Made by a program: the position numbers and the translations under genes. A DNA stretch of 64,000 nucleotides from Pavona decussata (Eukaryota): positions 2,790,001 through 2,854,000 of the forward strand of contig CDRNST010000214.1 in assembly GCA_977016875.1 (NCBI GenBank). The letters are read 5' to 3'. The notes beneath the pieces are model-generated. The model was not told where the DNA came from. It worked only from the letters and a program-made list of their open reading frames with translations, and searched no databases. Of this stretch, positions 18,773 to 64,000 are shown one piece after another. Position 1 is the stretch's first letter. Each line of letters starts with the position of its first letter.

Positions 18773-20864
18773 TAACTCGATGAAATGTAAAATGGGCAAA
18801 CATCTGAATATTGCACCCTACGTAACTAATGCCAGTGCCGAACGTTCATTAGAACGGAAAAGGCTCTAAGACTCGCAAGAAAGAAGGCAAGGGTGTTTTT
18901 CTTTTACTAAAATCGGAGATAGGCCAGCCTTGTTTATAATGTGCCGATGAACTGACATAAGCAGTTACTGTTTACACACACAAACATTATGACTTCATAA
19001 CTTCTATAGTAATGCGAATTTCAAGACAGAGATTCGTAACGGTTTGCATCTGGTATCGGCTCAATATTTAACATTCAAAATTTTACACTTTTTGTTGTTC
19101 TGTTCACCAAAACAACAAAATCTGGCTGTGACTCGAAACTCAAGAAAACCTTTTCAGTAGAGCATACATAGCCAAACAGCTAATCTGTAAAAGTTAGGGT
19201 TTCCAAGGTATGATGGCGAGGAACGTTCCGTAACAACAAAGTGGTAGTTTATTATGATTATCCCCTCTTCATGTTCCAATTTTGCCAGTAAAATGATGGT
19301 CTTACGCAGAGGGGCAGTAGAATGTTCAGAAAAAAGCGTTTTATTTCTCTGAAAAGTTTCAAATATCAGGCAAGAAGCCAAGTAAAAAAGTATATTTATA
19401 CTACTAGCCGCATGCCCAAGTAAAATGCTCAAAACCTGCGGCATAATAAATCCACAAAAGCCTACTGAGCGGAAAGGGATAACATGGAAAAGAGTTAGCA
19501 AATGACACGATATAGATTCGAATCACTGGACTCACCCTCAAGTCGAGCTCAGGTTTTTTCTCTTGGAGAGCGAAAACGACAACCAAACAAAACGCTTGGA
19601 AAGCATGGAACGCGATTGAGCCACGTGGTGATGCCACCTCGCTCCAAAGGCCTCACGAGCGAATGTCGGAGGTCTGGGGCTGGGTGGGATGGCCTACCTC
19701 CCAAATCAGCTGGACGAGTGACGCCCAACAGCTAGGGTCTTTATATATTCATAATGGCAGACGGCGGTGTCTGCCATTTTGAAGATCGCCAAGACCTTGG
19801 GGTCGAGGTTGAGTAACGTCAACAACGACTGCAACGAGGATAGACGAGGCGAGCTCTTCTGATTTTCTGGCGGAAAGTACATCGTGCTAAGCTTTTCCAT
19901 CTCGCTCTTACTGCCTGTTTCTTGACAAGGTAGAACTCCAAACCAGATAAAGCACACATATTTTTATTGGAAAAATTCATCAATTAACACCACACTTAAG
20001 CTTACTTTAATTTTACGTAAAAATGTATCTCATGCAAAGTTCCAATGAACACTAACTCACTGGAATTGTAATATGTGAAAGCGGTATACGTGAATAAGCA
20101 CAATAGACCAAGCGCACACAATCTTGTTAGTATAGAACGAACTGTCTCAAAAACTGTGGCTTTCTATGTGCTTATTGGCTGGATTAGGTCCGTAGGATAT
20201 TGCTGTGGTAAAATGTATAGCCGCCATGTTTTTCCATATGGTGGATTGAATGACACACGGCATGGATTTCTTGTAGTAATTTTAATCTTTAAAAAAAGCT
20301 CTCAAATATGAATGTATGTTGCGCGAATTAGCTTCATACAAATTGCTTTAAGCTTCCTACTTCTTGGTTATATACTTAATATTGTGAGAATTATGAGCGT
20401 TTCTACAAAGTTATGCAAATCTGAGCAGTTTCCTAGCAAACGATAACAGAAATACGTTAATAATCTAAACACATAACTCGCTGCTCTAGTTAGCCGTTCG
20501 TAGACGCAAGCCGTCCAAAAACGAGATAATAATTTAAAGTTTAAAATAGCATGAAGGTTGTAACGAGTTTATTACATAACGGCGACATTCTTTCGTCTTC
20601 CTTTCTATTGATCTACCCAAAATGTTTCATTTTGGTCAAGCTTCCGATTTATTGAATGCGTTTCTAACAGCTGTTTTCAGTAGCTCTTACAAAAAAAGTA
20701 TATATTCAAAAACACTCGCATAAAATATATAGTGTTAGAACACTTCGCGGTAATATAGTCAATTCTAAATAAACTTAACTTAAGAGCACTCATTAAAATC
20801 TCTTTAATTACATGAAAAATTACTTTTAACTCGTTAACTTGTGTCTGCTTTGTTACTTTTGATA

Positions 20865-21797
20865 TTACACCGCGGTTTCTTCATCCTCTTCATCCCGTGC
20901 TACTGCACCCGCAGGGTTTCGTATCAGCGGTTTGCGCGGGAGTGTAGGCGTTGCACCCGGACTCTGTTCGTCTTCTGAATCTGTAACATACACATCCAGC
21001 AACTCCTTGAGAGGCCTCATGGCATGGGCATGGGGATGGTCAGCCTGGTCTCCAGGGATGTACTTGTTGGACCGCTCTCCATTGGTGTCCTCAATATAGA
21101 TGCGCTCTACCTGGGATTTTCTCTTCTTTTTCCGTCGGCAAAACACGATTAATATGAGGAGAAGAAACCAAAGAAACACGAATGATGAAACGCTGATGAC
21201 GATGATTTCTGTTGGAGTTAGATCCTCCTCTTTCGTTTCTTCTGTCTCGGTGGGGCATGTAAAAGCGTCGTAAGTCCCGAACAGCTTACACTCCGAGATG
21301 TTGAGCACTTTATGGCAGTAGAAGCCGAACAAACTTACCGAGAGCTTGTAGTGTGCAATGCTCCCAGAATCGGCCACATCGGCAAGGCAAGACTCGTAGT
21401 AAAACAGAGCTTGAGACACCAGGGCCTTACTGCAATGCTCTTGGAGCACTCCTTCGTAGAACTGTTTATAACACAACGTCAAAGCTAGCTCTTCAAGAGT
21501 CGTGTTTCTAAACGCCAGGCTGTAGTTTGCTAAGGGTGTCATGTGGACACCTGACGGGGCCCATCCTGGGGACTCACCGGAATGGACCAGGAACTGCACA
21601 GTGGTGACATTAACGGATGGGGGGTTCTGAAGGGCACTTGTTGTGTCAACCGGAAGGAGGGTGTAAAAGCGACCCACAGTTGTCAGTCCCATTCCTTCGT
21701 CAAGGGGCACACTTAGCACCAGTCCTTCACGGTAATCATCGAACTTTACGGTCATCGAGGCGTTGAGTTGTTCCAAGTTCTTGGCATACTGCCACAC
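20865..21797 (-). CDS. Giant gene terminal exon: C8-like domain, TM helix, cytoplasmic tail
   Basis: VWQYAK... continues the LDEFK LamG motif of the previous exon; IIVISVSSFVFLWFLLLILIVFC TM followed by RRKKKRK; ends EEDEETAV*. Confidence 0.92.
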   Translation of the reverse strand: MWQYAKNLEQLNASMTVKFDDYREGLVLSVPLDEGMGLTTVGRFYTLLPVDTTSALQNPPSVNVTTVQFLVHSGESPGWAPSGVHMTPLANYSLAFRNTTLEELALTLCYKQFYEGVLQEHCSKALVSQALFYYESCLADVADSGSIAHYKLSVSLFGFYCHKVLNISECKLFGTYDAFTCPTETEETKEEDLTPTEIIVISVSSFVFLWFLLLILIVFCRRKKKRKSQVERIYIEDTNGERSNKYIPGDQADHPHAHAMRPLKELLDVYVTDSEDEQSPGATPTLPRKPLIRNPAGAVARDEEDEETAV

Positions 21798-24700
21798 CTG
21801 TTGGAAATAAAGACAATTGGATTTTTTATGATATGCGCTTTCGAGAAATAGTCCTACAGAATATAGCTGTGCCTGAGAAATTGTGTTCATTCTTCTAATC
21901 GAACAAAATTATCTCCCTTCTTGGTCGCCAGAGGTACCAAATCGAGTTGCGTGGAAACACATTGTAAAGGAACGACCTGTAAGAAAAGGGTCAGGGGGGG
22001 GAGGGGGGAAGGGAAGTGTGTGGAATCAACGTTACTTCAGTTTGGGGCGACTTAACTTAAGTTTAGGGGTACCGCGATGGTGCGACTTAGCAAGTGATAC
22101 ACATGCCTGCATTCCATGGTTCGACGGTGGGTTTCTTAACAATGATAGTTACATGGTAGCAGTTCTGAACTTTACTTTATTTTTGTGTTGGCTCGGAGAT
22201 GATCAGTTAATAAGTGTCTGGTTTGCTAATCTTTCATAAAATTGTTGTTACCTTAAATTCGTCCAGGGCACCACGCATGTCGTACTTGCTGTCCATCATA
22301 TATTCTCGAATGTACCGTCCGAGAATCAGCAACCCGTCGAAAAAGAACTGCTTTCCTATCTTTACACCAAACGTCGTTGATTGTCGATGCTCGCCTTGTG
22401 CGTACGCAAACGCTTGCAGTCGGCCATCGATTCTTCTCCATGTCACTGCTAAATGGGTCCATACACCTTCGTGGATGTTAATACCAGTTACAAGTTTATT
22501 CTCATCCCAGTCAACTTGTATTCCATCTTTGCAAATGATAGCGAAGTTCCCACCACTTGTCGCAGCAGAGAAGATGGCGTGCATCCCGACGATCCGTTCT
22601 GTAGAGTGTTTCTGGCTCGACGAGCAAAGATGGGCAACACTCGATCCCTTGTTGACTAAGCATACCCATATTTCAATGGTAAACTCGTCGAGAACGGGTA
22701 AGCTCGAGTTACCACCGTACATGACAGCTGTGTTACTGGAAGAAAATTCCAACATGTAACCTGCGCCAGAAAAGCTACGCCAGGCGTTCTTTGTCGTTAA
22801 GAAACTGTCCTTTTCTCTTATTTGAAATTGGGTGCCGAGTTTAAGGTCAAGTGACTCTTGACTTAGTACACGCTGGTCTCTTGTTTCACTTGAAGCGTTT
22901 GCAGCTGGTTGTTGAGTGGGATCGATTAAATGCATCGCAAGGCTTCTGTCGTTGTACTCCTTTATCCACTTGCTCTCTTTCGCTCCACAAACGCCATCTG
23001 TATCGTTTCTCATTGATTGTGGCATTTGGATTGCAGTTCCAAGAGTACCATTGTAGGTGAGGACGTTCAGCTGAACTCCTTCGTACTCTAGGAAAGCTAC
23101 CTCTAGAATGGTACTTTTGACCCAACGGTACTTGATGTCAGCAACCTCTACCCATTCATCAGTCTTTTCAAGCTTAGAAGATTTGTTAGTCGCAAAGGTA
23201 ACTGTTCCACTTTCGAGTGTCTCGAGATCACTATAACGAACAAAGAGCATCACTTGAGAGGTACGTAGTGCGACTTCACTGATTCGTCGGCAGCTCATTC
23301 TGTTATTGCAAGGAACTATCAACACTTGTGCCACGACTGCAGATGAGTTGATGAGCTGGAAAGCACCGGGCGCTTCGAAGTGGAAGTTCACGCCCGTCAC
23401 ACTGGTAAAATGAGGATCGCCAAAGGTAAGGGCCATTTGGGTCTCAGAGGAGTCGACTACAGAGGATTCGTCTGCGATTGCGCAGTCTGTCCCCATCCAG
23501 CCATCCGTGCACCTACTGCAAGGTAATGCCGCGTTATCTTCATCAGATAGATTAGTAATATTACCTCTCCAGTGTGGCTCGCACTCACATGTACCATTAG
23601 TTACACTACACACACCATGCCCGTTACATGTTCCCCTCAGTCCACCCGGGCAAAGTTTTGAACAATCCTCACCCCAGTAGCCTGGTTGACACTTACAGGA
23701 GACACCATCTGTTGCGTTGACATCGGTGATGGCATAACCAAAGACGCATCGTGTCGTGCATCGCGAACCAATCCAGTATGGAAATCGCTGAAGCACAAAG
23801 TGATGACACAGTTCCTTTGCTGGCCACTCAGTTAGATCTACAGTGCTCTGGCAATAGTCGGCAAAAGTAACCACGGCGTAAACGGCAGAGTGTAAATTCA
23901 GTGACACTGAAATGTCGTGAAGGCAGACTTTGTAGTAAAACTGGGCCACCTGCAGAGTGAGTGCCTGGCATCTGGCGTACAAGGTTCCACTCAGAACAAG
24001 ACTGAAACAGAACGACTCTGCGTCTAGTTGCAGCCTTTCATTAACAAACGTAGTGGCCTTTAGTTTCAAGCGAGGAATGTCAGCATCGGAGAACGACCAA
24101 CGCGGTTCATGAAATTTGATTGTGAACAGGTCATTTTTCCCTTGTAAATCACGAATGACTCTTCCCTCGGCCTGGTTGAACTTCCAAAGGTGAAGCAAAT
24201 CTGGGTAAGTGTCAACTTGCACATTCAACCGCCAGTTGACTTTCACAAGGTCCGGATTCGTCCGTCTTTTCCATATGCGCATTTCGTCGATCTCGCCAAC
24301 AAAGGTCGATTCAGGAAGCAGATTGTCTGAGCCAGGTGAAGGCTGCCATTGCCCTAGCACCAAGACCCCCCCGTTTCCGAAAACACGGCTGTCAAGCTTG
24401 AATACGCGAACTCTGACTTCTCCGGTAGAGGTAAAAAAGTAGAAGTGAAGGATTCCAACCAGCCGTTTATAGACCAAGGTGATTTGATTCCACTGATCGA
24501 TCTCGAGTGTGAAACCAGTGTCATAAACAGATCCGTTGTAGATGATTGTCAATGTCACATTATCAACCACAGCAAAAATGCTCTGGCTTAAGTAGGAAAT
24601 GATGACCCCTCCCGATTTGTGCGCCTTTATGAGCAGTTCAACTGTTAGGATATCGAAGGTAGGAAAATTTATGGGCCCTGATCGAACTGAGTGATCCACG

Positions 24701-27700
24701 AAGAACAAGTTGAATCCGCCACCAGTGGGAACGCGGTGTTCTAGGTAGTGCAAGAACTTATACATGAATAAAGTCTGAGAGCCGTTAACTATTGAACTGG
24801 TCTTCAAAGCAGTGATGTATGACTCAAGACTGTTAGATTCGTTAAACGAATGATCTTTGCACGCCCCGAGAAGGCCTGTGGAGTCCTGGCAGAAGATAGC
24901 TGGCATATGAACCGTCACAGAAATGCTATGTCCAATAGTTAGCACAAATTTAATTCCTGTTGGACCGAAGATGTGAAAGGTGACCGTGGAAATGCGTACC
25001 ATGACAAAATGCACCGATAGCTGGGTTCTGTGATCAACTAGAACCACTTTTCCATTTAACCAAACAAGAGGAAAGATGGGAACCGTCGTTGAAAGCGTTG
25101 TGATCGGTGCACGGATGACAACATGGGTGTTATGGTAACCGAACGAGAATCCTGTGGTGCAAAGTGTGGTGTAAGTACCATCCGTTACACATGGAGTTTG
25201 TCGAAGCTGGATGACGAAGTTACGCTGAATGGATCGAAGAAGGTAGAATTCGCCAACTACTCTGTAAGTGAAACTCACACCGAAGAAAGTTGTGAAGTAG
25301 CCAAAACCACCAATCGATGCAACCACGATATTGGTTGATGATATGCCGGTAACAAGCTTAACAGCAAATTGACAGTTTGTTCCATTCCATCCAGGACTAC
25401 AACTGCTGCAGTTTCCATCACCTGCCCAATTGGCTTCACATTTGCATTCTCCTGTGGTTCTGTCACACACTCCGTGTCCTCCACATGTGTTCAAAAGACC
25501 GCCTAGACATAACTGGGAACAATCAGTGCCCCAGTATCCCTTGGTACAGACACAAAGGTTATGGTCACTGGGATCTGCCGCACCAAAGACGCATTTCACG
25601 TGACATTTGTCTCCTATCCATACAGGAAAGTGAACTCCAGGAAACTTGTTGCAAAGCGACTGAGCTGGCCACGTGGTGAGGTTCAGGCCAGCTTGGCAGT
25701 GGTCAGAGAACGTAATTACAGCTGTCAGGGCTGCACTGATATAACCAGTTGTTGCTATGTCTTTTAGGCAAACAAGGTAATGGAATTCGAGCTCAGCCTT
25801 CAAGCCACCATAGCAGAGGTCATAAAGTTGACTCTTGTAGAAGAGTTCGAAGCAGAATGACTTTGCGTTCTTTTCCAGTGTCTTATTGGGAAAATATATT
25901 TCAAATGGTTTGTCAGTGGATGTAAAATTTGCCTTCACGTCCGCATCAGAAAATATCCATGAAGGTTGTTCCCACGGTGATCTCGGCAGGTAGATGTGCT
26001 CGTCGGTTGCGAGATTTTTGATGACATCACTCTCGCCTTCGTTGATCTTCCAGAGTCCTGTGACGTCAGGATGCGTTGGGAGAACATTCATGCCCCAGTT
26101 TTGCTGTATGAGAGCTGGATTGAATGCTCGTTTCCACACACGGAATTCATCAATGATACCCACAAATGATGTTACTGTAAAGTTTTCGTTCTCTCCGGGC
26201 GAGAGCTCCCACTGGCCAAGAGAGAGGATACCACCAGGTAGGAACGGATTGGAGGATAACACATAGGACCTGCGCTGTACCTTACCCAAAAAGTCAAAGT
26301 GATAGAACTCCAGCACCAGAGTCTTGTGATGCCACACAAGCGATATGTGACTCCACTTCTTAATTGTGACCGGAACACTAGTATTTATGATGGTTTTTCC
26401 AAAATGGATAGTGATAGAGTTCTCAATCATTATTGCGAATGACTGTAGGACTGCGTACGAGAAAACCGTTCCACCTAATCCGTACGGTTTGACGAGGATT
26501 TCAATTGTGATATCTACGTTATTAATAAATGTTTTCGTGAGCGGCTTGGACGAGGCTCCTGTGTGGTTGAAGAGGAGGGCATAAATTCCTCCAGCTGGCA
26601 ATCGCCTCTCTTGGAAGTGTTGGTACTTCAAGATGATTAAGCTTTCTATCTCAAGCACAAGAGCGTGGATTCCAACCCCTGCATTCAAGACTGACTGAGA
26701 GACGTTTCCAGGAATGACACTTGTGTTGGAACTAACCGTAAGATCATTGTTGGGATCGCTGTCGCAAGAACCAAGCAGCCCCGTCGAGTTTTGGCAATAC
26801 GCTGGCTTCACATCCACCTTAAAACTCAAGTACCGTCCGTCGATGCGAATGTGTATGGCAAAATTGTCTTGCCAACTGATTTGATAGTGATTGTGTCCTG
26901 TGTACTTCAGATGAACGCCAAGTTTAATGTCTCCAAGACTGGTGATAAGTCCCGACAGAAGTATAAGCTTTCCGTTGACCCAGATAACTGGAGCTCCACC
27001 AGTGATGTAGGGGGCGTGGAATGAGATCACAGCAGAAAAAACTCGTATTCCTATCGCGTTAACACAAACGGACTGTAATCTGCAAGGCACGTGACGAACT
27101 TGGACTTGGAATGACAAGGAAGGCACATGTATAAGGTAATATTCGCCGACAGCCACAAGAGTGAAGCTGTAGCCATCAAAGGTAACGTAATGGCCTCCAA
27201 TAGATGATATCGCGATTGATACGTGTAACTTGCTAAGCGTAACAAGGGCAAGGGAGCAATCGGACCCAGTCCATCCCGAGGAGCACCTGCCACAGTCCAC
27301 TGTTCCGTTGTAATTAGCGTGACACTCGCAGTTGCCTGTCACGCTATCACACACTCCGTTGTTGTTACACGGTCTGTCCGCTCCGCCAGGGCAAGGGCTT
27401 GCGCACTCCGGACCCCAGTAACCACGGTAACATACGCATGTCTCAGAGTCAATCTTCTTACCGAACACGCATTTTTGATCGCAGTCTTTTCCGAACCAGA
27501 TAGGGAAATCCCTGCTAGGGAATTCATTGCAAAGTGGTTTGGCTGGCCACACAGTAAGATTGTTGATAGCCTGGCAATAGTCAGCGTACGCTATTATCAC
27601 TTCCATGGACATGTACAAGGAGTTGAAACTTGCAATTCTTCGCAGGCAGGATCTGAAGTAAAACGTAGCCACGCCTGGGCCCAAGCTGTTACATTTTGAA

Positions 27701-30700
27701 TACAGTGCCCCCATTAATAGTGTCCTATTGCAGAATAGTTCAGCTTCTACTTGGAACGTTTTGTTCTTAAAAGGGAAAGTTTGTTCTCGATCAAAAAATG
27801 GCATTTGCAACACCACGTCTGAATATCTCCATTCAGGCTCCTTCCATGGTTTGAAAGGAAGTTCCAGCCTCATTCCTGTCACTTTATCAACCGCGACGAT
27901 TCCTTCACCTTCGTTAAACTTCCATGCGTGCGCGATGTCTGGAGTGTCTACACTCACCGACCTGTTCCAGGTCTGAAGGATGAACGCTGGGTGAAAATAG
28001 CGCGTCCATATGCGAAGTTCATCTATAAAACCAGCAAAGAACTCAACAGGCTGAATTCCGGATCCATCTAGGGATGGCATCCAACCAGCCAAGGCGATAA
28101 TTCCTCCGGGAACAAAAACATCCACGCCAATGTTAATGTCGAGGCGATGTAACTGTCCACCAGATGCGAAGTAATAGAATTGTAACACCGTGGTCGATTT
28201 TCTGAACACGAGACTTAGCTGGTTCCATTCGTTAAGCTCCGCAGCGATATTTGTTGGGTAAACGTTGTCTCCGTAGTATATAGTGAACTTTCCTCCCTCG
28301 TTAGTGACAAAGAATGTCTTGCTTGTGGTATAAGAAAGGATGACGCCGTAACGGATTGTTTTGAACATGATTTTAATAGTTATGTCCGTGGACACGAACG
28401 CCTTGTAGATTACTCCAGAAACGACTGTTGTGTGTTCAAAGTAAAGCGCATAGCCAGCGTTTGCGTCTCGATATTCAACGACGTCTTTATACTTGTACTC
28501 GAATAAACTATGGCAAGCCTTCACTTTGAGTTTTGTGATAATAAGCGATGTTATAAGTTCTTGGGTTTTGTTCTTCCTACTGGATGCATTTTGCCCCAAG
28601 GAGGATGCAGAATCGTCTGCTAGGCGGAAACTATCTGGTTGGTTTGTTACGTTGAACGTAAAGCTTCCTTCAGAGCAGTTTGTATTCGGATGGTAAGACA
28701 CCAGTAATTCTAGCAAACCCTGGTTGCAAGAACCAAGTAGACCGATCGCTGATTTGCACACTGATCCTGCTGCGTTTGTGCTTAGGCTCAAGTACCGTCC
28801 CGTGACTCGTATTTTCAGGCGCAGTCCTGTGTATTTCACTTCCCACAAATATGCTGTGATTTTGGTGACTTCGAACCCGTAGGTTTGCAGAGTTATTTGA
28901 TGCACGTCAATATCAATGACTTTCCCGTTTAACCAAACTACCAGATTTCCACCAGACGTGTACGGTCCGTGCAAGACAACATTGTGCGAAGATATTTTCA
29001 GCGCAATGGAATTAATGCAGGTTAACTGTTGGAAGCACGACACCAGTCGAATCTGCACGACCACGGAAACATGTATGGAGTATATGAGGTAATATTCACC
29101 GGTGACGTGTAAGCTGTAGCTGATGCCACTTAGCGATGTAAAGTGCCCTCCAAGGGACACTGTGCCTACGCCTACTAAGACACTGCCAGGTGGCCATCGG
29201 GTGACTGCCGTTGAACAGTCCGTTCCAGCCCAACCAGTTGAACAGGTTGTGCAGTTTTCATTTCCTTGCCAGTTTAGCTCGCAGAGGCATTTTCCTGTCA
29301 CAACATCGCAGACTCCGTGGTTGTTACAAGCGCGTCCTTTCCCTCCAGGACAAATGCCCGAGCAGTTTTCTCCATAGAAACCTGGATCGCATACACAAAC
29401 ATCACTGTTGTTTGAGGCTTTGCCAAAAATGCACGGGATTGTACAGTTGGTTCCTATCCAGTTGGGGAAACGCTTTCCGGGGAACTTGTTACATAGCGAC
29501 TGAGCTGGCCAGTACGGCAAACCAAGAGTTTTCTGACAATAATCTGATATTGTTATCACGGCATCGATCGACTGAATTGTTATTCCAGTGTCCACTACCG
29601 CTTGTACGCAGGCGCGGAAGTAAAATTCTATTGTTACGTTGCCCAGCGATTGGCACGCAGCATGAATTGGCCCTTTAAATATGAACTCGAAACACACCTC
29701 TGTAGCGATGCCCTGCAAAGTCGCGTTGTTTTCGTTCGGATTCACTGCGACCACGGATGCGATGGGTGCATCAGAGAACACCCACTTCGGCTTTCCTAAA
29801 GGATATTTCGGGAATGACAACGTAACACCAGAAACAAGGTCTCTTACTATGGTATTTTCGCCTTCGTTGAATTTCCACAAATTCAAAAGTGACTGGGCAT
29901 TAGGTTGAACATTTGCTCTCCAACTTTGTTGAATCAGTGAATAGTCAAAAGGTATGCTCCATACACATATCTCATCTATTTGTCCGTAGAATACGTTAGT
30001 TGGCTGAACGCTGATAGAACCAGAGGCAGGTTGCCACATGCCGATGGCAAATGTCCCTTCAGCAAGGAAAGGGTCCACGCTCACACTGAACTTTCGTATC
30101 TGCACAAGCCCCGAGGAGAACGTAACAAAAACAAACAGTTCCAGCTTTGCACGAACGAATACAACAGAGATTTGATTCCACACATTAGCTTCAGTGGCAA
30201 TTCCGGTATCGTAGACATCTAACCCAATGACAACTTTAACTGTTACGTGGTTACTGATGTAAACTGTCACATTGGACGTGTACGAGATCAAAGTACCTCC
30301 ACAAACCTGAGGATCACATGATTTCACCAGCAGCTGGAAGGTTACTGTTTCACTCACAAAAAGGCGAACTAGGCCCTGTGTCACTACTGCCGTAAATCGA
30401 TAATAGAGACTGTAGATACCACCGTAAATAACCCTAGTCTCCTTGCGAACCTCTTCGTCGATGACAATAACTGATCGGGTTTCTTTTCTCACGGAGAGTT
30501 TTTCTTTGACAAATCTATTCACGTCACCACTAGATTCGGTTGCTCCTCCAACCCCTTCTAAAACTGTCGTTGGCCGGTTTCCAGAGAACACAGAACTGTC
30601 ATTTCCTTGGGTATCGTTTTGCCCCAGCTTAACTTCAGCACAAGAACCGCAAAGGCCATCAGCAATTTGGCAGAAGCTCAAAGATACCGTGGATTCCACA

Positions 30701-54700: not shown

Positions 54701-57700
54701 TGACAATATAGAGCCATCCACCCCCAGCGCCGTAGCCGCCACCGCTTCCTGGTTTGTCAGGCCAATAAATAGACCCATACTGAGTCCCTGAGGCTGCTCT
54801 CCCACCCGGTGAGGCGTGGCTGCCACCTGTATTTCCCGAACCACTACCAGGACCACTTCCGGCTGAGTAACCAGCGCCTGCTGAGTCTATCAAGCCTCCA
54901 CTCTCTACAATGACGGAGTCGGCTTTCATGGTCACGTGATTTGTTGCCAGGACGAGTTGACCGCCTGTTGATAAATAGAAATTTGAGAAGAGAAATGCTA
55001 CGTAAAAGGTTCCTTTGCAATGGGTCAATAAAATGCCAACACACCATTCACTGACTCTCGTCATAACAACAATTAAACCATAATCTATTTCGAGTTTTCT
55101 GAAAAGGAAAGGATCAGAAAATACCAAGAGAAACGAAAATGAACCCCGGGTTGTCGGTTAATGTCAAGAACAGAGTTAATTGTTGTACAGAATTAATATG
55201 TTGTACATGCCGAATCATTATCTGTTTTTAAGAGTAGACTTAAAATTTATTTGAATATTTATTGAATCAGTAGCCATCGAATTTTATCTAGTTCTAGAAA
55301 TTTTAAAATATTTTGCAAGTTTTTAGTTATGGAAATTGCTTTGTACAGGGTTAACCTCACGATTTCCCTTTTCAGGATGTTTTTTTTGTATTGTGTTGTA
55401 GCCTCCTGAATAAAATGTTATGTTATGTTATGTTAACACAAGAAAGAGTTCAGCCAAGTAGAAGAATAAAGACAGAAATGACATGAAAATGCGCCAACCT
55501 TTCTTAACTGTTGTGTCCGCGATATCAAGCACAACCTCGACAGGGGTCATTTGTATCCTAACCACGCCGGCATTATTAACGATAAGCAGTGGAATAATTA
55601 AAAGCCCAGGTGTGAATGGATCAAATGGATTATCAGCCAGCCATTTAGACTCCTCAGGCAGCTTAGCGCTGTGAGCTGTCCCACCAAACTGTACCAAACC
55701 ATTTCTTTCAAGAACAAGCTTTTCCACTCCGGTCATTCGTCCGTTGATAGTGGAGCTCTCGCCTCGTAGGATTACCTCCGTGGGAAACACGATCTCGGCG
55801 TACTCGTCCACGTGAAAGCCGCACGGAGCATCCATGTAGGTGTGAGTGGACTCCACCACAAATACGAACAAACGCTGGCGAGCCATCAGCTTAATAATTC
55901 CCGTTTTATCGCCGGTTACTTCGTGGGCGATGGCGGTCACATTTCTTGCGTTTTGTGGATGGTAGAAGATGACGGTGGAATGACCTGAGAAGACGAACAA
56001 AGTGACACTTTTAATTTATCTCAAAATGTCATGACAAGCAATTCGAACGTAGAAACCTCTGCTATTTGGATGGGGAAGAGGACAAGCACAAAGCAAACAG
56101 TTTTGAACAGTCATTTATTAGCTCAAAGAAATGGAAAAGAAGCTCTTGTACCCATTCATGGAGCTGTTAAGAAAATACACAAACTTCAGTGCCACGAAAT
56201 GTAAATTTTCCACGTTTATCTAGGGAGCTTGGCTTTAAGATTTATAATCACACGGATTTCATGACAGAGCAACTCATTGCGGTTCATGTTAAATGTAATC
56301 TTAATTATTTTCCAAGAAGCGAGTGATCTGTTGGAGACCATTTGAAGCCGTATTTAACAATGTCACCAAACGGAACAAGCCCTGTTTTTTTTTTTTGGCA
56401 AGCCCTACTTTGCCATTTCTCAAATTAAAAGTTATCAAATTTGTTACGAACTTTGTCTCCAACGAATTTGTGAACTACGTTTCCCAGTTGGCAGATTGAT
56501 TGGTTGAATGAAAATGCTAGCAGTTCTGAATTTCCCAAGTAACACTTGAAGCGCACTTAAACAGGATCTGGGAAATCATACCTTCCACCTGCATCTCATC
56601 AAACTCGTAGAAGACTGTCTGGTTCTCCATGATGACTGTTGGTGTTGCGACATTGTTGTTCTCATTGTCGACCTTCACCTTGGCATGTTCTGGTTTAAAG
56701 GAAGTTAAGTTTGCATCCGGGTTGTACTTCAGATCACGGTACTGCGGTCCGCGGCGACTCTCGTATTTGTAAACAGTACCTGCCGCGCCTGCGTTGTTCT
56801 GGTAGCCAGAAACGCTACCACCAACGGAACGAAATTTACCTGAAAAACGCCAACAAAAAGACATCAAATGATTTTCTCAAAGGGAGAACAAACAAAGACA
56901 CAGTGAAACGCCTGGAACACCTTGAAAATTTTAGTCCATCTTTTTTCCAAGTTGAAAACATTTCCATACAATAACAACTGAACTATTGTTTTTCGGTTTC
57001 CTTTGATTCCAATGTCTTTTAGCTTTTAAAGTAATTTCCGAAAATAGGTCACAGCGAATAACATCAAAATTTGTCTTCCATTATCAATGCGAAAGACTGT
57101 TATGTACATGACATTTTTTCACCTTAACAATGTACTTTCCGATCTCGCGTTCAAATCGCTAACGCTCTTCAAAATACTATATCTAGAGTGCACATTTAAC
57201 TCTTAATTAAACCTTTCTAGGTCTAAAGCTGATGAAAGGGACTGCATACCACCAAAATTATTCTGGAAGTCAACATGAACTCCAATCCTGCCGCCTGCGC
57301 CTGCTCCACCACTGCTACTGCTGTCCCCACCATTGACATTGATCTCTCCATGTCCAGTAGCGTTAGTTGTCTCCACGAAAACACTACCCCCACTACCTCC
57401 TCCACCGGAACCACTTCCGCTCGTTCCTTTAGCGGAAATGAGGCCGTCAAGATGAATATTTTTGCCGACTTGCCACCACAAGGAGCCTCCACCTGACGAG
57501 CGATAAGGAAAAATAATGAAAGGTAACTTCAGCATTTAAAACATCTTTACCATATTTACCTTTAAATACGCTAACGCATTATTTTTTGTGGACTTTAGAT
57601 CTCGCCAAGCCATGTTAAAGTTTTGCTAGTAAAATTCTTGCGACATGCTTTGATATCTGTACAAAAATTGACCAAACGAGAAAATTACAGAACACATAAC

Positions 57701-60700
57701 ATAGTTTTATCGCCAAAAATTCACCAGATCTTCATCGCCCCGTGGGGTAGATACTACCCTGGGTCGGGTTGTTCGAAAGCCGATTAGCACTAATCTCTGA
57801 TTAAAAGTTAACCGAGGTTTTCATCTCGCTCGTTAAAGATGATTTTAAAGGCTCATTTTAAGCTAATTCTAAAGAAATGTCTTGGGCAAAACTAAGGGAA
57901 AAAAATCTTTTCGACGAATCCTTACGGATTAGTAAATATACTCGAATCAAAGTTCACGTTAACCCAGGATTAGCGTAATTGGGCTTTGAACAACTGGGCC
58001 CTGGAGTTTTGGGATGGCATACTCAGTGGATCCATTTTTCGTAACCCATTAATGCGCAATAAAGCAACATAAACGGCATTAGAGTATTAGAGATATGGCC
58101 AAAATTCAAACACTTTAGGAACATGGAAGTATTCTACAAATTGCAAGCCATGGTCGTCTTTTTTCTATTCTAAATTTCCCGCGTGCCAGTTTGGGATCTG
58201 ATAACGTTACACGGTTATTGTTAGAAAAGCAAGGACTGTTTGTGTTTATTAATTGGACATAATAGTTTTCAGTTAATGACTTGTTAAAAATACTCGGAAT
58301 ATGTGAAGAAATTCGGCTTCAAACTAAATCTTCTGTTTAAGTAACAATTCTATTTTCTGGGTGTACATTTCCTGAAAAGTGATAATCGATTCCGATAATA
58401 TCTGTCGTAAATAAATGAATTCAAACTTACCTGCTCCGCCGCTCCCAGATCCCTGTCCTCCGCCGCTGCCAAGAGACAGCGGTTTATACACAGAGCCATA
58501 AGCACTACCGCCACGGTGATTATTGTAGGATGTTCCCCCTTGACCACCAAATCCAGCGCCCGATCCTGTGCTTGCTGCAGAGGTCGACCCCGCACCAGGA
58601 CCAGTGGCAGCCTGGTGTCCTGCACCATCCAGCATCACTACACCTTTAGTTTCCACCTCAGCAAAGGCAGAGTAAAACACCCCATGATTCACCTTCACGG
58701 TTCCTTTGTGGAGGACTTCAAACAGGGATGACGTCATTGAGACGATAACGTCATGGACACGGACAAGGTCCAATAGACCACCTTGTTTAATTATGATGTG
58801 CGCGTAAGAAGAGTTGCCTGGTTTTGTGATGTCAACATAAGTGCGGTTTTCTGTAATTGCTGTTTGCGCAGTTGATGCAATCTTCAGGGTTGCTCCGTCC
58901 TCGAGGAATAGAAAGTGTACACCAGTCATTAGGCCGTAAAGCTCGGATCGGACACCGTGGACGTGGAATTCCGCCGGAAGGACGATCTCCGCTCCCTTGT
59001 CGATGCGATAGCTGCAAGGAGCTTCCGTTCTGTTGGTTTCGGATTCGATGACTTCCACATAGATTGTCTGGTTGACTTTCAGATGGAACTGCCCTGTTTT
59101 GTCCCCAATGAACTTGTGAGCTATCACTGTAACTTTGGTTTCGTTTGGATGGTATACGATGAGTCTTGAGTAACCAGTAAGCTCCACCTGAGTAGCAAAA
59201 AAACTAGAGTCATACTGGAGTCATCTTGTGCTCACGAGTGCACATAACAAGACGATGGAACCAGATTAAAATATTTATCGCTCTATGACAAATGAAACAG
59301 CATCGGTTTCAAAGATTATTTAACAATTCTGATTTTAATATAATACAAATATTTTATGTCCATCAACACTTGAATCTCTTGACTCAAACCGCGAATTATG
59401 TGACGGTTTTTTCAAAACCGCTTAATGCTGTGAACGAAAACTTAGTTTGACAGTTCTAATTTAAGTCATACATTGATGAGTACTGTTTTAAGCTATGTAG
59501 AAATGATCGTTATGGTGACAACTTATTTTTAAGATAGGGTTCAACACTATCTCAAATTCGCTCTCCTACTCGCTCGAGCTCTCATAAGCGCCTCGCGCTT
59601 GGTTTTTTACCCACCCGAGAAAAAATATCCTAAGCTCGACATGAAATGAAGTCTAAAGGGGGCCTTAAGTCTGTGAACGAAAACTCAGCGTGACGGTTTA
59701 AAGGAATGCTCTATATTTACGAGTACTTTTTTGTGGTTCTTTGCATTACACTGAACAGCATATATGAAATGTTCGTTAGGGTGACGTGCCTGGCCTTCAC
59801 AAGTATTTTGCTACGAAGTTATTTTTAGATGACAAATTTGTTCTTTGGCGCTCTAGATCTAAGACCCTGTTCACGAGTATATGTTTCCGACTTCAACAGT
59901 TTTTGCTTTAAAAGGGAGATCACTAAAGAGTTTGCACGGTCCTCGGTCCAGACTTGAACGATCATGGGAAATATGGCAAAAAACGGAGGGTTTGGAAATT
60001 ACGTTGAAACATCGGGACAGGTCGTTATAAAAATAGTTATATCGTTGTAAAGTAAGGATTTTCCATAGCTTTCGGGTTGACAGTGAAACGAACGAAGACA
60101 AATACCAGTAGAGGAAACACTTTTGGAAAAGTATTCTTAAAAATCTTCGTTTTCAAGTGAGAATGGATGTTAAACATTTGGATGAGGCCAAAGAAGGGGT
60201 CTGATTTAATAAAGTCAGGGCCCCTTTGTAAGCCACTTTCGTGAAAGGACTTCCTTCCAAAATATTAGTAAATAAGTTATTATTATAATTTGCTCTAACC
60301 TCATCAAACTCGTAATCTGTTGTCCCTTCTTCCATCAAGACTGTCGCCTCTGGAACATCCCTTCCTTCATTGTCCACGTGCAAGTAAGTGTGATCTACAG
60401 CCAGGAAAGTAGTGTTTGTCTCTTTCATGTATTTCAAAATGCGGTATTCAAGTGGACGGTAGTTCTCCTCTTTGTAAATGGTCCCTGCCGGTGCGCTATA
60501 GGTGTTACTACTGGGATTTATTCCGCCACGATCAGTAAACTTTCCACCGTACGTATACCTCCAACGGCAATGTATTCCCACTCTACCCCCGGATCCCCCG
60601 CCTCCTTGGTTACTAGCATCTCCCCCAGTAACAGCGATTTCTCCATGTCCAGTCATATTTGTTGTTTTGATAAGAATACTTCCTCCGCTGCCGCCTCCAG

Positions 60701-63676
60701 CATGGCCACCTGTTCCTTTGCCACCTTGAGCTGAGATAAGACCATTTAATTCAAGTCGTTTTCCAACTTCCCACAGGAGTTGTCCACCTCCGGTACCTCC
60801 TGTTCCCCCACCATTTCCGCCTCCGCTGCCAAGAACCAAGGGGCGATAAACCGAACCATACGCTGGACCACCTTCACGGGCACCCCTCCCACCGTGTCCT
60901 GCACCACGACCAATCCAGTAAGAAACAGAAAAGCTGTTTCCTGCCCCAGGCCCTTGCTCGGGCGGATGGCCTCCCATGTCCAAGTTGAAATGACCTTGAC
61001 TGTCCAACCAAGCAAACGTGGATAGCATCTCGCCGTGATTCATGCTCAGCTTTCCTCGATATTTTACTTTCAAAATATCGCAGGTTATTCTCAAGAACCC
61101 CGTGTTTTTACGAAACTCGACATCGCCACCTTTCTTGACAACAATAACGGCAAAGGAAATATTACCCGGTTCCGACACTGCAATATAGTTTTTGTTTTCT
61201 ATCAGGGCCGTTTGCACGGTTGAAAAGAAATCTGCTACAGCGCCCTCCGAGACCAGCAAATCCCGCACACCAACGATCATTCCTTCATAGATAGACCGAG
61301 TACCATGCATATGAAACTCAGAAGGTAAAATGATCTCTGCTCCAACATCAATCTTGTAGCTACATGGTGCTTCAGTTTTGTTAGTTTCCGACTCTATGTA
61401 CTCTACAAAGACCTTCTGATCTTGGCGGATGTGAAACTGCCCACTCTTGTCGCCTATAAACTTGTGCACTACAGCCGTGACATTGACATTTCCTGGGTGG
61501 TACACCACAAGACGTGAATTTCCGGTTAGTTCCATTTCATCAAATTCGTAGTAAGTGGTGTTTTCCTCCATAAGTACAGTGGCCCCTGGTACAAGCAAGC
61601 CGTCATTGTCGATGTGCACGTAAGTGTGATCAACAGCCAACATGGTGGTGTTTGTTTCCTTCATGTACTTGCGGTGACGGTATTCAAGAGGCCTGAAGTT
61701 CTCTTCTTTGTACACCGTACCAGCAGGCCCACCATACTTACCACTCTTGCCTCCGTGATCTGTAAACTTCCCACCGTATCTATATCGCCACCTGCAATGA
61801 ATTCCAACTCGTCCACCCGATCCTCCACTTCCAAGGCCAGTGCCAGAACCGCCCGGGACAGAGATCTCCCCATGACCAGTCATATTCGTTGTAGTAATTA
61901 AGATGCTACCTCCACTTCCACCACCTGCGCTCGTTCCTTTTCCGTCCGTTCCTTTTGAAGAGAGGAGCCCGTTTATCTGAAGTCTTTTGCCAACAATCCA
62001 GAAGATGGACCCACCACCGGAGCCGCCTACTCCTTGTCCATTCCCTCCCCCGCTACCATACATCCGAGGGGTGTAAACAGAGTCATACGGGATCCCACCT
62101 TCACCAGAATCTGTCTTTCCACCTTCTCCACCGTGACCAGCTCCGGAGCCAACATTGTTTTGCGTTATTCCACGCCCTACACCCTCTTCTGGTCCAAATC
62201 CTGTGCCGTCCAGAATAAGACTGCCTTCGCTTTCAATCCAGCCAAACGCCGAGTAAATATATCCATGATTCATGTTCATCCGCCCTTCATACTTGATCCT
62301 AAACTCGGAACATCTTAAGCTTAACGTGTGGTTAAGAATACGGCTGAAGGTCATTTGCGAGTTTCTTTCCACGGTAACTGTAGCAAACGAGAAGTTGCCT
62401 TTCTCGTCTATCTCAACATAACGGCGATTCTCGACTCTAGCAGTCTCAGCGGTGGAAGAAAACTCAACAAAACCACCACTTGCGATGATCAAGTCTTCCA
62501 CTCCAGTGATACGTCCCTCAATAATGCTTCTTGTCCCGTAAATATTGACAATAGCCGGAAACACAACTTCAGCTCCTTGATCAATCTTGTAACTGCATGG
62601 TGCCGTGGTCTCGTTGGTTTCAGACTCGACGACTTCCACGTATATCGTCTGATTCACTCTGACGTGAAACCTTCCCGTGCCGTCACCAAGGAAATGGTGA
62701 ATGATAACAGTGACATTAAGACCTCCCGGTGGGTGTCTAACCTGCAGATTAGCGTGTCTCGTCAAGAACAGTTCATCCAGCTCATAGAACAAATGCTCGC
62801 TCTCCAACAACATCGAAGACATGTCGGTTTTACGATCTTCGTTGTCAACTTGCATGTACCTGTGAGTTGCAGTAACGTACGTCTTATTCGTGCTTTTGTC
62901 ATACTTCAAGTCAGCATATTGTGGTCCACGAGCAGTTTCTTCAACATACACCGTACCCGCTGCAGCGTAGGTTTTTCCTCCACCTCCGTAAGCTTTGAAC
63001 GCGCCTGCATACTTATGCCTGAACCGCACATGCGCAGAGATACGACCACCTGAGCCACCAGATCCACTCGGACCCGAACCATCTCCTCCCATGACATTTA
63101 CTTCTCCATAACCAGTAAAGTTTGTTGTCTCGATGAGAATACTTCCTCCACTACCCCCGCCAGCACTCGTACCAGAACCGTCTCTACCTCGCAAGGTGAC
63201 AAGTCCATCCAGCTCTATCTCCTGTCCAATTCTCCAATGAAGCATCCCTCCCCCAGAGCCCCCCTTTCCTTGTCCATTGCCTCCACCACTACCAAAGTGA
63301 AGTGCGCGGTATATGGAACCATATGGTTCTCCTCCAAGCTGCCCCGCCTGATAAACACCACCTTCACCACCATGGCCTGCTCCAGAGCCAATCATGTTCT
63401 TCGTATTGCCAGAACCAGGGCCCAACTCTGCTGGGTGGCCAGTGTAGTCCAAGACAAGTTTGCCTTCGCTTTCGACCCAAGCCCATGAAGAATCGATCTC
63501 ACCGTGATTGATGTTAACTAACGCGTGGTACTTAAGCCTGAAAATAATCGCAGTAAAGACAAGCGTGTTGTTGATTCGTGAAAATTCCAATCGCGAGCCT
63601 TTCTGGACATAAACTTCAGCAAATGTGATGTTACCAGGTGTTGTGAGGAAACGAAATTCTCTGTTTTCTTTAATAC
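20865..63676 (-). CDS. Giant (>10,000 aa) single-pass membrane protein: Gly-rich repeats + EGF array + 9x(EGF/VWD/LamG-pentraxin/C8) + TM + PDZ-binding tail; 5'-partial, 20 exons
   Basis: Exons (minus strand, 5'->3'): 63676-60300, 59187-58431, 57492-57250, 56839-56582, 55984-55499, 54964-54557, 53548-53256, 52727-52061, 51532-51326, 50873-49521, 48808-48185, 47971-47642, 46752-46275, 45603-44915, 44386-42097, 41649-41520, 40276-37288, 36559-34063, 33274-22252, 21797-20865. All introns are GT-AG with matching phases; the total is 30,032 nt (2 nt + 10,010 codons including stop). Confidence 0.88.
22252..33274 (-). CDS. Giant gene 11,023-bp exon: cassettes 4-9
   Basis: Within the 3697-aa ORF; six ~630-aa EGF-VWD-LamG-C8 cassettes (the last completes in the next exon); acceptor aatag|G and donor AAG|gtaaca. 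Confidence 0.93.
34063..36559 (-). CDS. Giant gene exon: cassettes 2-3
   Basis: Within the 912-aa ORF; GHFTNFD, ALCGNCDGNREND, LIDEVRFWN. Confidence 0.92.
37288..40276 (-). CDS. Giant gene exon: cassettes 1-2 (EGF, VWD, LamG/pentraxin, C8-like)
   Basis: 998-aa ORF. VWD (AHYTTFDG...GLCSSCDSNIEND); LamG (WNQIALVW...GGILALG...FIGQIDELRIWN...WKFNEGYG). Confidence 0.92.
41520..41649 (-). CDS. Giant gene small exon (not in ORF track)
   Basis: ttacag|A CTG CAA GAC ... AAC AAT|gtaagt encodes (R)LQDSNPIAWVLAFPVSNERKAAVVDSSLIHSMRCTDSSAPANN and bridges phase 2 to phase 0 exactly. Confidence 0.8.
42097..44386 (-). CDS. Giant gene exon: EGF/laminin-EGF array and start of orphan domain
   Basis: Overlaps the 725-aa ORF; EGF repeats followed by PIVNC...AWFGYNNKN...GQPSKFVPG. 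Confidence 0.9.
44915..45603 (-). CDS. Giant gene exon, EGF array
   Basis: EGF repeats, phase 2-1. Confidence 0.9.
46014..46143 (-). pseudogene. Frameshifted intronic duplicate of EGF-coding exon segment 42626-42753
   Basis: Same orientation with long identical runs (gatgtagtttgtaatgcatttatcacattcagatcct; acacttacaggctggtaagttgcct); carries a 1-bp deletion and a 3-bp insertion. Confidence 0.85.
46275..46752 (-). CDS. Giant gene exon, EGF array
   Basis: EGF repeats, phase 1-2. Confidence 0.9.
47265..47499. mobile_element. Harbinger/PIF-like MITE
   Basis: ggccgggttgttcgaaagcc...ggctttgaacaactgggcc; homologous along its length to 57762-58000. Confidence 0.8.
47642..47971 (-). CDS. Giant gene exon, EGF array
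   Basis: EGF repeats, phase 1-1. Confidence 0.9.
48185..48808 (-). CDS. Giant gene exon, EGF array
   Basis: EGF repeats, phase 1-1. Confidence 0.9.
49521..50873 (-). CDS. Giant gene exon: end of Gly-rich region and start of EGF array
   Basis: CSGHGxC...CxCxxGxxGxxC tenascin-type EGF repeats. Confidence 0.9.
51326..51532 (-). CDS. Giant gene exon, Gly-rich repeat
   Basis: AGSGGGKSSASGGGVLYV...GGGGASGGTVRV. Confidence 0.85.
52061..52727 (-). CDS. Giant gene exon, Gly-rich repeat
   Basis: ISGKVVELYAKKVTGDKTGKLH...GAGHGGRGG. Confidence 0.85.
53256..53548 (-). CDS. Giant gene exon
   Basis: GAGSGGRIVVYL...HGSPGTVFV...YDFERVHL; CAG|gtaagg donor. Confidence 0.86.
53580..53960. repeat. Two degenerate copies of a ~105-130-bp satellite-like unit
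   Basis: tgccgttag...tatggtactgttt...ttcagtctgt.gttgac.tcctaaattgt at about 53583 and 53836; a related diverged pair lies at about 59428 and 59671. Confidence 0.6.
54557..54964 (-). CDS. Giant gene exon, Gly-rich repeat
   Basis: GSGPGSGSGNTGGSHASPGG...PGSGGGYGAGGG...GGGSGGAI. Confidence 0.87.
55499..55984 (-). CDS. Giant gene exon, Gly-rich repeat spacer
   Basis: HSTVIFYHP...GDKTG...VVEST...APCGFHVD; phase 1-1. Confidence 0.87.
56582..56839 (-). CDS. Giant gene exon, Gly-rich repeat spacer
   Basis: GAAGTVYKYESRRGPQY...VIMENQTVFYEFDE, paralogous to the repeat segment in the 60300-63676 exon. Confidence 0.87.
57250..57492 (-). CDS. Giant gene exon, Gly-rich repeat
   Basis: GGGSLWWQVGKNIHLDG...GGGGSGGSVFVETTN...GAGGRIGVH; phase 1-1. 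Confidence 0.87.
57762..58000. mobile_element. Harbinger/PIF-like MITE
   Basis: TIR ggtcgggttgttcgaaagcc / ggctttgaacaactgggcc with 3-bp CTG target duplication. Confidence 0.82.
58431..59187 (-). CDS. Giant gene exon, Gly-rich repeat
   Basis: VELTGYSRLIVYHP...GSGAGFGGQGG...LGSGGG; cag|GTG acceptor, G|gtaagt donor. Confidence 0.88.
60300..63676 (-). CDS. Giant gene exon: about three ~410-aa glycine-rich repeats
   Basis: Lies within the 1200-aa ORF. GxGAGHGGxG / GSGGGNG / GGGSGGSILI / GGSGGR motifs recur about every 1230 nt. Acceptor ttttag|GT at 63676; donor GAG|gttaga at 60300. Confidence 0.88.
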
Positions 63677-63879
63677 CTAAAACGCAATTTTGAAAAAGAT
63701 AATCACTCGGTAAAGAAAAGACCTCAAGTTTGATATACTTTTTCTCTACACGCAAAACTTTTAAAGGTTTAAAAGTGCTGGTTTAATACTGGCCTTGCCA
63801 ATTAAGCCCCAAAACAGTCCCTGGAAGTTGTTACTCAACACTAGTTTAACATTCTTGTAATTAAATTGGAAAGAAGAAA

Positions 63880-63958
63880 TAGATTGATTGATTGATTGAT
63901 TGATCGGTTGATCAATTGATCGTTCATTTGGTTGGTCGATGAATTGATGTATTGATTG
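63880..63958. repeat. (GATT)n tetranucleotide microsatellite, degenerate
   Basis: gattgattgattgattgattgat... Confidence 0.8.
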
Positions 63959-64000
63959 AAAAAAAAATGTAATTTTGTTCACGTAGACAAGGAGCACCAA

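Follow-up and report, generated by a model that had tools for sequence, protein, structure and literature searches.

What kind of product is encoded where one strand of a coral genome carries very long open reading frames (ORFs) one after another, and is it one giant protein or several? The question is raised by a 64,000-nt stretch of the Pavona decussata genome (contig CDRNST010000214.1; C214:2790001-2854000; hereafter the window), free of N runs, in which an ORF scan found such a chain on the minus strand between 63,782 and 20,865, including one uninterrupted frame of 3,697 amino acids (aa) at 22237-33327. A preliminary description, drawn from the window alone, had read this chain as part of one gene for a surface protein. 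Here we follow the gene into 110 kb of upstream DNA fetched beyond the window edge. Positions are counted from the first letter of the window, and those above 64,000 denote the continuation of the contig in the direction upstream of the gene. Searches and structure predictions were run exon by exon, and exon ends, lengths and composition were computed on the spliced chain.

We are highly confident that the locus holds a single-copy, minus-strand gene for a type I membrane protein some 20,800 aa long, with the anatomy presented below. That this protein is a surface filament, tethered to the membrane and able to cleave itself, which serves adhesion, barrier formation or mechanical coupling appears probable to us, and the mechanism that we propose for it is offered as a possibility, tentatively held.

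Results

Extent and continuity of the gene

The window contains 20 coding pieces between 63,676 and 20,865, which join in frame to about 10,010 aa, the same total as in the preliminary description, and an independent splice heuristic recovered the exon ends given there (63676, 51326/50873 and 41520/40276). The earlier statement that the N-terminus was still upstream was right and much understated. The Gly-rich array that opens the in-window part extends 82 kb beyond the window, on the minus strand throughout and up to ∼145.3 kb, with one open frame of 2,544 aa within this upstream stretch, and ∼10,700 residues of the protein are encoded there; only the 3′ 43 kb of the gene falls inside the window. 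Over the whole locus the heuristic gave 68 exons, 67 introns, a gene span of ∼124.6 kb and a product of 20,582 aa. One donor had been placed wrongly by the heuristic; with the RNA-confirmed site 42097 in its stead, 199 aa were gained and the length rose to ∼20,800 aa, with bounds of 20,174 aa (summed aligned spans) and 23,027 aa (summed open frames) and a predicted mass of ∼2.3 MDa before glycosylation. Read from tip to membrane, the chain would consist of a signal peptide, a first unit bearing a discoidin domain, ∼30 further Gly-rich units, ∼45 EGFs, a small module, nine units resembling D assemblies, a transmembrane (TM) helix and a tail. N-glycosylation sequons had been called dense; they are enriched, but moderately so (1.25 per 100 aa vs 0.78 expected from composition, 1.6-fold).

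All unit matches in the 602-Mb genome fall in this one locus, and the gene is therefore single copy. An assembly artefact or collapsed repeat was ruled out, the units being only ∼30–58% identical to the reference unit and the ORFs intact.

Transcript evidence comes from contigs of four sequencing runs aligned over 38,500-44,400 (5.9 kb). RNA status was guessed for three of the four, and intron-shaped gaps in the contigs argue for an RNA origin. The joints 42097|41649 and 41518|40274 are present in RNA-type contigs of two runs from different studies; both have GT..AG ends on the minus strand and zero depth in the introns, which lie at 41650-42096 and 40275-41517 and flank the exon of the small orphan module. 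The EGF exon is covered by a coral metatranscriptome, every run that reaches 44387 ends there at an exon boundary, and one contig carries 3 kb beyond it, towards the upstream EGF exons. The RNA joints thus splice the EGF half and the VWD/LamG half of the protein together via a 132-nt exon, in agreement with the earlier proposal of one gene rather than separate Gly-rich/EGF and VWD/LamG genes. They thereby answer the refuting condition set in the preliminary description, namely a promoter or polyA site between 40.3 and 42.1 kb that would divide the two halves.

Continuity at the RNA level was tested at two introns only, and internal promoters, alternative polyadenylation or exon skipping might yield several products instead of one giant protein, such as a beta-helix protein that is secreted and an EGF/VWD/LamG protein that sits in the membrane, the full chain being rare or absent. 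Public models of relatives would fit such a division insofar that all are at most 6,400 aa, the Saccoglossus model covering the beta-helix part and those of Branchiostoma and Diadema the EGF/VWD part. However, short models are to be expected of automatic annotation on giant repetitive genes, and one model from a sea anemone, ‘hypothetical protein QZH41_005193 [Actinostola sp.]’ (5,796 aa), unites 14 beta-helix matches with the VWD/LamG units and TM that follow them. Moreover, the introns cut through the units, so that nearly every exon begins and ends in mid-unit and cannot stand alone (the window’s first exon starts at unit position ∼52), RNA joins the EGF and VWD halves, and the only signal-peptide-like start noticed, no scan for internal starts having been made, is at 145,438. 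We consider several separate products quite unlikely.

A beta-helix array with a discoidin tip

The in-window part of the Gly-rich array occupies 51326-63676 (minus strand) and comprises units ∼26 (partial) to 31, with matches to the unit hidden Markov model (HMM) in order and phase. It is spread over nine exons, at 60237-63676, 58431-59187, 57250-57492, 56546-56839, 55685-55984, 54557-54964, 53175-53548, 52061-52727 and 51326-51532 (ends heuristic). Some six repeats of 410 aa had been reported, which is correct for the window; over the whole gene the unit HMM counts ∼31 units of ∼410 aa, an array of ∼12,700 aa with 17% Gly. Unit-profile coordinates run on from exon to exon (e.g. 2–196, 192–277, 275–341, 339–401), which places the introns within units. 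Since the units adjoin without linkers, the array is likely to form a rod, either continuous or segmented. Cross-linking through a conserved Cys where the unit begins was considered and ruled out, as this Cys was found in only five of the ∼31 units.

The preliminary description had left these repeats without a fold. As reference we took a complete unit of 411 aa at 61371-62603 (minus strand). No Pfam-A or NCBIfam family matched this unit or the Gly-rich frames at 63,782-51,288, and 3,587 relatives were found at E≤1e-3 among 1.84 billion cluster representatives. The AlphaFold (AF2) model of the unit, built on an alignment of seven units of the coral gene and 22 unit-length segments of database homologues, is all-beta with high predicted accuracy (pLDDT 91.7, pTM 0.90). 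In an exhaustive structure search with this model, right-handed beta-helix adhesins ranked at the top, with EtpA at Z 15.2, HMW1 at Z 13.7 and the Candida proteins Awp3b, Awp14 and Awp1 at Z 13.1–13.6 (Awp3b 13.6), followed at lower ranks by autotransporter passengers, tapirins and tailspikes. Foldseek returned only weak rows, with E above 1e-3, every one of them a beta-helix protein, and the best match in the ESM Atlas was a mollusc cluster (TM-score 0.86), with bacterial and plant beta-helix clusters next. As modelled, the Gly-rich unit is a right-handed beta-helix, most like those of bacterial and yeast adhesins.

Full-length matches to the unit are eukaryote-type sequences. Separately, its Gly-rich core (unit residues ∼123–300) is ∼40% identical to repeats of bacterial proteins of ∼2,000–2,500 aa (P0021, P0015 and similar), which contain six to eight repeats and match no Pfam or NCBIfam family. 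One such protein is flanked by ribosomal, sigma-54 activator and lipoprotein signal peptidase (signal peptidase II) genes, and is therefore bacterial. The bacterial module as query gave no confirmed locus among the genome contigs searched, and its bacterial range is drawn from that one contig context together with ESM Atlas taxa.

At the distal end, the first frame starts at 145,438 with MSGNQLPRRSIILFVLLQAVSDLVQAA, signal-peptide-like when judged by eye, and is followed by a truncated first beta-helix unit. Next come three small exons with matches to successive stretches of the F5/8 type C (discoidin) profile PF00754, two of them at profile positions 39–82 and 84–126, each sub-threshold alone as expected of pieces, after which the first unit resumes with GGPGTVY. 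The discoidin domain is inserted in a loop of the first beta-helix unit, at the distal tip of the protein. The same first-unit layout is present in a Saccoglossus kowalevskii protein (XP_077861759.1, P0010; 4,555 aa), in which FA58C (discoidin) lies at residues 256–386, between the motifs ‘GRIS..GG’ and ‘GGPGTIY’, and beta-helix units follow.

The EGF array and an orphan module

Between the beta-helix array and the membrane-proximal units lies an array of ∼41–48 EGFs of teneurin/tenascin type (42480-50873, minus strand; Pfam EGF_TEN, EGF_Teneurin and EGF_2), encoded by exons 49494-50873, 48185-48808, 47642-47971, 46275-46647, 44915-45603 and 42097-44386, the last with its EGF part to ∼42480. 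Matches to EGF_Teneurin/EGF_TEN reached E 1e-20 to 1e-47 in frames between 50,922 and 42,078. It is followed by an orphan module of ∼150 aa (41520-42480, minus strand), split between the end of exon 42097-44386 and an exon of 130–132 nt (41518/41520-41649). The module has no Pfam match at E≤0.1, and it stands at the same position, between the EGF array and the first VWD/LamG unit, in homologues from Actinostola (P0210) and Branchiostoma (P0187). The EGF block counts 1,895 aa with 291 Cys, so both the ∼1,900 aa of EGF and the orphan domain described earlier were found.

The first Cys-rich module after the beta-helix array, at residues 113–157 of the frame 49351-50922 (minus strand), scored above the DSL cut-off (29.2 vs 24.2 bits), and the next EGF exon was above the cut-offs for EGF_DL_JAG and JAG1-like_EGF2. 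As a sign of a Notch ligand these matches were ruled out, being absent from the Branchiostoma and Diadema homologues; they are probably cross-matches of EGF sequences.

Nine VWD/LamG units and a single GDPH motif

Self-HMM and unit alignment resolved the region 22252-40276 (minus strand) into nine units, a to i, each with the order helical C8-like module, EGF, EGF, VWD and LamG/pentraxin-like domain, carried by three giant exons (37284-40276, 33953-36705 and 22252-33266). Pfam matched VWD (E 1e-38), Laminin_G_3 (E 5e-24) and EGF in the frames 37283-40330, 33921-36719 and 22237-33327, and neither C8 nor TIL in the frames scanned. The AF2 model of unit c (pLDDT 77.5) runs from one helical bundle through two EGFs and the VWD and LamG sandwiches to another helical bundle. 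With it, Foldseek found the D assemblies of VWF, MUC2, MUC5AC, MUC5B and FCGBP (E ∼1e-10), laminin LG4-5 and pentraxins; by sequence, unit c had no match in the PDB. The model and these matches together suggest a module like a D assembly with a LamG domain inserted and EGFs where TIL and E would be. ESM Atlas C8 clusters were matched at 0.87, and homologues of the units (28–97% identity) carry precomputed matches to PF26129 (‘Vwde’) along with VWD and EGF_Teneurin. The label C8 accordingly denotes likeness of fold and features, resting on the Foldseek, Atlas and PF26129 matches. Of the nine EGF-EGF-VWD-LamG/pentraxin-C8 repeats described earlier, the number and the other domains stand, and C8 is recovered by fold and not by Pfam.

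As a side observation, the last unit (22249-24021, minus strand) had a single PDB match by sequence, in the EGFs of the ‘tubular mastigoneme protein’ of a stramenopile (9ufe, E 0.004), which is likewise an extracellular filament protein of tenascin-type EGFs.

Autocleavage at Asp-Pro of a GDPH motif is established for the VWD domains of MUC2, MUC4 and RGM. In the coral protein the motif (context LTFGDPHFTSVTG) opens the ninth VWD, the one nearest the membrane, at 23410-23421 (minus strand) and ∼590 aa before the TM. When the nine VWDs are aligned, FGDPHF is present in VWD 9 only, the other eight reading G-[HAGTF]-[GHY] without Asp-Pro. Exactly one GDPH was found in 13 of the 17 homologues checked, 555–575 aa before the TM where the model includes a TM, and one homologue (P0188) has a precomputed RGM_C match. 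The suggestion that the protein is sheddable thus gains a concrete basis in a single membrane-proximal FGDPHF that recurs in the cnidarian-type homologues checked.

Membrane anchor and tail

A hydropathy scan identified a single TM helix, IIVISVSSFVFLWFLLLILIVFC, at 21138-21206 (minus strand), followed by the basic stop-transfer sequence RRKKKRK. The cytoplasmic tail of ∼90 aa (20865-21137, minus strand; stop codon 20865-20867) is acidic near its end and terminates in E-T-A-V within EETAV (20868-20879, minus strand), a class I PDZ-ligand pattern, so that the TM and PDZ-ligand tail noted before are both present. In homologues the TM is at the same relative place, and the C-termini ESAV, ESAL, ESAM, ESHV, ETNV, DSFL and ESSI follow the pattern [ST]-x-[VLIM]. 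A Cadherin_C_2 match in the tail (E 0.0098) was below cut-off and set aside. Candidate polyadenylation signals lie at 20808, 20653 and 20573, with several AATAAA/ATTAAA within 300 nt of the stop.

In joining LamG and EGF repeats to one TM and a PDZ ligand at the C-terminus, the protein bears the hallmarks of Crumbs and neurexins; its EGFs are of teneurin type, and its first Cys-rich module exceeds the DSL threshold. It could therefore be read as mainly a cell-cell or cell-matrix adhesion or signalling receptor at junctions, synapses or the apical polarity complex, comparable to Crumbs, neurexin/Caspr or teneurin and acting through the EGF/LamG ectodomain and the PDZ-binding tail, and not as a filament of glycocalyx or mucin type. 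However, a ∼20,000-aa ectodomain with a ∼12,700-aa beta-helix rod would be far longer than any junctional cleft, a VWD with GDPH is typical of shed mucin-like proteins, and the DSL match, as described above, is not shared by the Branchiostoma and Diadema homologues. We regard such a receptor as unlikely. The type I TM protein with a ∼20,000-aa ectodomain is consistent with the very long tethered surface filament first proposed.

Homologues and their distribution

Proteins from Branchiostoma belcheri (Bbelb_427260, 6,372 aa) and Diadema antillarum (6,247 aa) contain EGF_TEN arrays followed by eight to nine VWD/LamG units. Many coral-type sequences share 50–97% identity, one of them from a Tara metagenome, and a mollusc-dominated Atlas cluster shares the beta-helix unit. 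For the Actinostola protein, rich in beta-helix units, a newer Pfam annotation available in precomputed form lists PF26129 and nothing else. Every homologue with a source name is labelled ‘hypothetical’ or ‘uncharacterized’, and no named family was found, in line with the earlier failure to assign the architecture to any; a literature search, which skipped most subscription journals, turned up no paper that describes it. The modules are arranged differently in P0011 (4,695 aa, intron-free, on a 14-kb metagenome contig), in which beta-helix units are followed directly by Laminin_G_3 and EGF_TEN, with no VWD match.

Coral skeletal proteomes include transmembrane proteins of EGF/LamG, VWA, ZP and mucin-like kinds, the skeleton occluding their ectodomains (PMC3748352, PMC4890752), and a role in calcification, as a component of the skeletal organic matrix or as an anchor of calicoblasts or desmocytes to the skeleton, deserves mention for that reason. 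The published skeletal ‘EGF and laminin G’ proteins are, by their descriptions, small and neurexin-like, with one or two LamG and one EGF and no VWD mentioned (PMC3748352, PMC4890752), and are thus probably different from the giant protein. Furthermore, the family was found in a sea anemone, an acorn worm and amphioxus, animals without a coral-type skeleton, which argues against a skeleton-specific role. A calcification protein is in our view highly improbable.

Flanking and intronic sequences

Downstream of the gene, in the region 1-20800, open frames on both strands stay at or below 135 aa and G+C content is lower (0.36–0.42); the region looks like 3′ untranslated region plus intergenic DNA. 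An element of ∼80 nt at 63879-63959, in the intron just upstream of the window’s first exon, recurs on many contigs with at least 83 matches, many of them tandem copies. The same intron contains a long microsatellite reading (SINQ)n in several frames (∼64,390-64,680), which adjoins an exon, and exon ends there are uncertain. The next gene upstream is CCDC40-like (∼158–168 kb). A copy of one of its exons lies antisense in an intron of the giant gene, outside the window (L007:2303-2635, plus strand; ∼95,303-95,635), a near-identical peptide (LVENKLK..DLLVDRLTQTVDRLREEIDM..) being encoded on the minus strand by the CCDC40-like gene itself; the intronic copy looks like a duplicated exon fragment.

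Discussion

We propose that the protein is built as an anchor, an extender and a tip. The beta-helix array would make up the outer two-thirds of the chain, a rod of ∼31 units, and together with the EGF array it would form a stiff stalk of 0.3–0.5 µm, for a filament of ∼0.4 µm, a rough estimate from the typical rise of a beta-helix and the size of an EGF. Such a stalk would hold the lectin-like discoidin tip far from the apical membrane, while the nine VWD/LamG units would provide lateral contacts near it, possibly dependent on Ca2+ or glycans. The single GDPH in the last VWD would self-cleave at Asp-Pro, as in MUC4, MUC2 and RGM. Non-covalent contacts or disulfides would then keep the ectodomain attached to a short TM stub, itself linked through the PDZ ligand to apical scaffolds, and force or low pH might cause the ectodomain to be shed. 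The logic would be that of a transmembrane mucin in which a protein beta-helix rod replaces the glycosylated mucin domain or, put differently, the design of a giant bacterial adhesin combined with the cleavage logic of MUC4.

These proposals should be interpreted with some caution, since several points weigh against them. RNA coverage amounts to 5.9 kb; 47 introns upstream of the window and most of those within it were placed from ORFs, unit phase and splice heuristics, and shorter products could arise if promoters inside the gene or alternative polyA sites are used. The signal-peptide call was made by eye, lengths in nanometres are estimates, and rigidity and ligand binding, like cleavage and cellular location, are predicted from sequence and models. 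Finally, GDPH is absent from the Branchiostoma, Diadema and Actinostola proteins that were checked; their gene models could lack part of the protein, or the motif may not be found throughout the family.

It could further be hypothesized, although we hold this to be rather doubtful, that several phyla (cnidarians, echinoderms, hemichordates, cephalochordates and probably molluscs) share an unrecognised surface protein of ∼2 MDa whose stalk is a bacterial-type Gly-rich beta-helix repeated ∼30 times. The module, frequent elsewhere in large proteins of bacteria, would possibly have been acquired from them before the cnidarian-bilaterian split, and epithelia would carry sub-micrometre rigid filaments with a lectin tip. 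If true, this would offer a possible molecular identity for some of the unassigned surface or glycocalyx fibres of marine invertebrates. The building blocks themselves are known; what would surprise is how large the protein is, that animals have a stalk of bacterial type and that several phyla share it. In size the coral protein is in the range of Drosophila Dumpy and human MUC16 and below titin, and if the full-length product is made it would be among the largest animal proteins. No described example of an animal surface protein built on a long beta-helix array of bacterial-adhesin type was found in the literature searched, and the unit belongs to no curated family though the reference unit has >3,500 relatives. 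The tip lectin domain, the nine VWD/LamG units and the self-cleavage motif make the protein a candidate for action at the interface of epithelium, mucus, microbes and substrate. For annotators it is a concrete case, the public models of its relatives being fragments named ‘hypothetical’ or ‘uncharacterized’.

Among known systems, MUC4 and SUSD2 resemble the coral protein in having a huge extended N-terminal region, a membrane-proximal VWD with GDPH, EGFs, a single TM and a short tail, and in a predicted two-subunit, sheddable design. The membrane-proximal VWD with GDPH before the TM, which marks the MUC4 type, is present in the coral protein and in homologues. The O-glycosylated Pro/Thr/Ser-rich tandem repeat of that type is replaced in the coral by a stalk of folded beta-helix units with 17% Gly; the coral protein has nine VWD units with LamG inserts where MUC4 and SUSD2 have one VWD, and it possesses a PDZ ligand. 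Neither NIDO nor AMOP was found in Pfam scans of all large in-window ORFs.

VWDE measures ∼1,600 aa and has no TM. The vertebrate protein has been described as a matrix protein of secreted type in which an EGF array accompanies one VWD (PMC7390686). The PF26129 matches on homologues, found alongside VWD and EGF_Teneurin, suggest a likeness between the coral repeating unit and VWDE; the coral protein differs in its nine VWD units, LamG, TM and 31 beta-helix units, no ninefold repeat or LamG being described for VWDE. With the D assemblies of VWF, MUC2, MUC5AC, MUC5B and FCGBP the unit shares the VWD beta-sandwich and a helical, Cys-containing C8-like module (Foldseek ∼1e-10), whereas the order VWD-C8-TIL-E of the VWF type is altered: TIL and E are missing, LamG stands between VWD and the C8-like module, two EGFs follow, and C8 is not matched by Pfam. 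RGM shares the context of the FGDPHF cleavage site, and through P0188 the RGM_C match, but RGMs are small glycosylphosphatidylinositol-anchored proteins with a partial VWD.

Crumbs, neurexin and Caspr, the last with a discoidin domain at its N-terminus, combine EGF and LamG modules with one TM and a PDZ ligand at the C-terminus. VWD and a beta-helix array are absent from these proteins, which are ∼10–20 times smaller. Teneurins are type II TM proteins with a YD-repeat shell and Tox-GHH, whereas the coral TM is C-terminal (type I) and only EGF_TEN/EGF_Teneurin were matched; the FN3 repeats and fibrinogen globe of tenascins are absent from the coral Pfam matches.

The stalk, finally, compares best with bacterial and fungal beta-helix adhesins, represented here by EtpA, HMW1, FHA, the autotransporter passengers Ag43, UpaB and IcsA, and the Awp A-domains of Candida glabrata. 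The coral unit has their right-handed beta-helix fold (Z 11–15) and a Gly-rich core ∼40% identical to bacterial repeats, and like them it would serve as a long rigid extender carrying a binding tip. It differs in its ∼31 units, in belonging to an animal type I membrane protein and in its spliceosomal introns; no two-partner secretion (TPS) domain, autotransporter secretion signal, beta-barrel translocator, autochaperone, Pfam or NCBIfam match was found by sequence in the unit, and the likeness is one of fold. The coral protein thus lacks defining features of MUC4-type mucins, VWDE, VWF D assemblies, teneurins/tenascins and TPS/autotransporter adhesins. By analogy, it would work like both MUC4-type mucins and TPS/autotransporter adhesins while belonging to neither.

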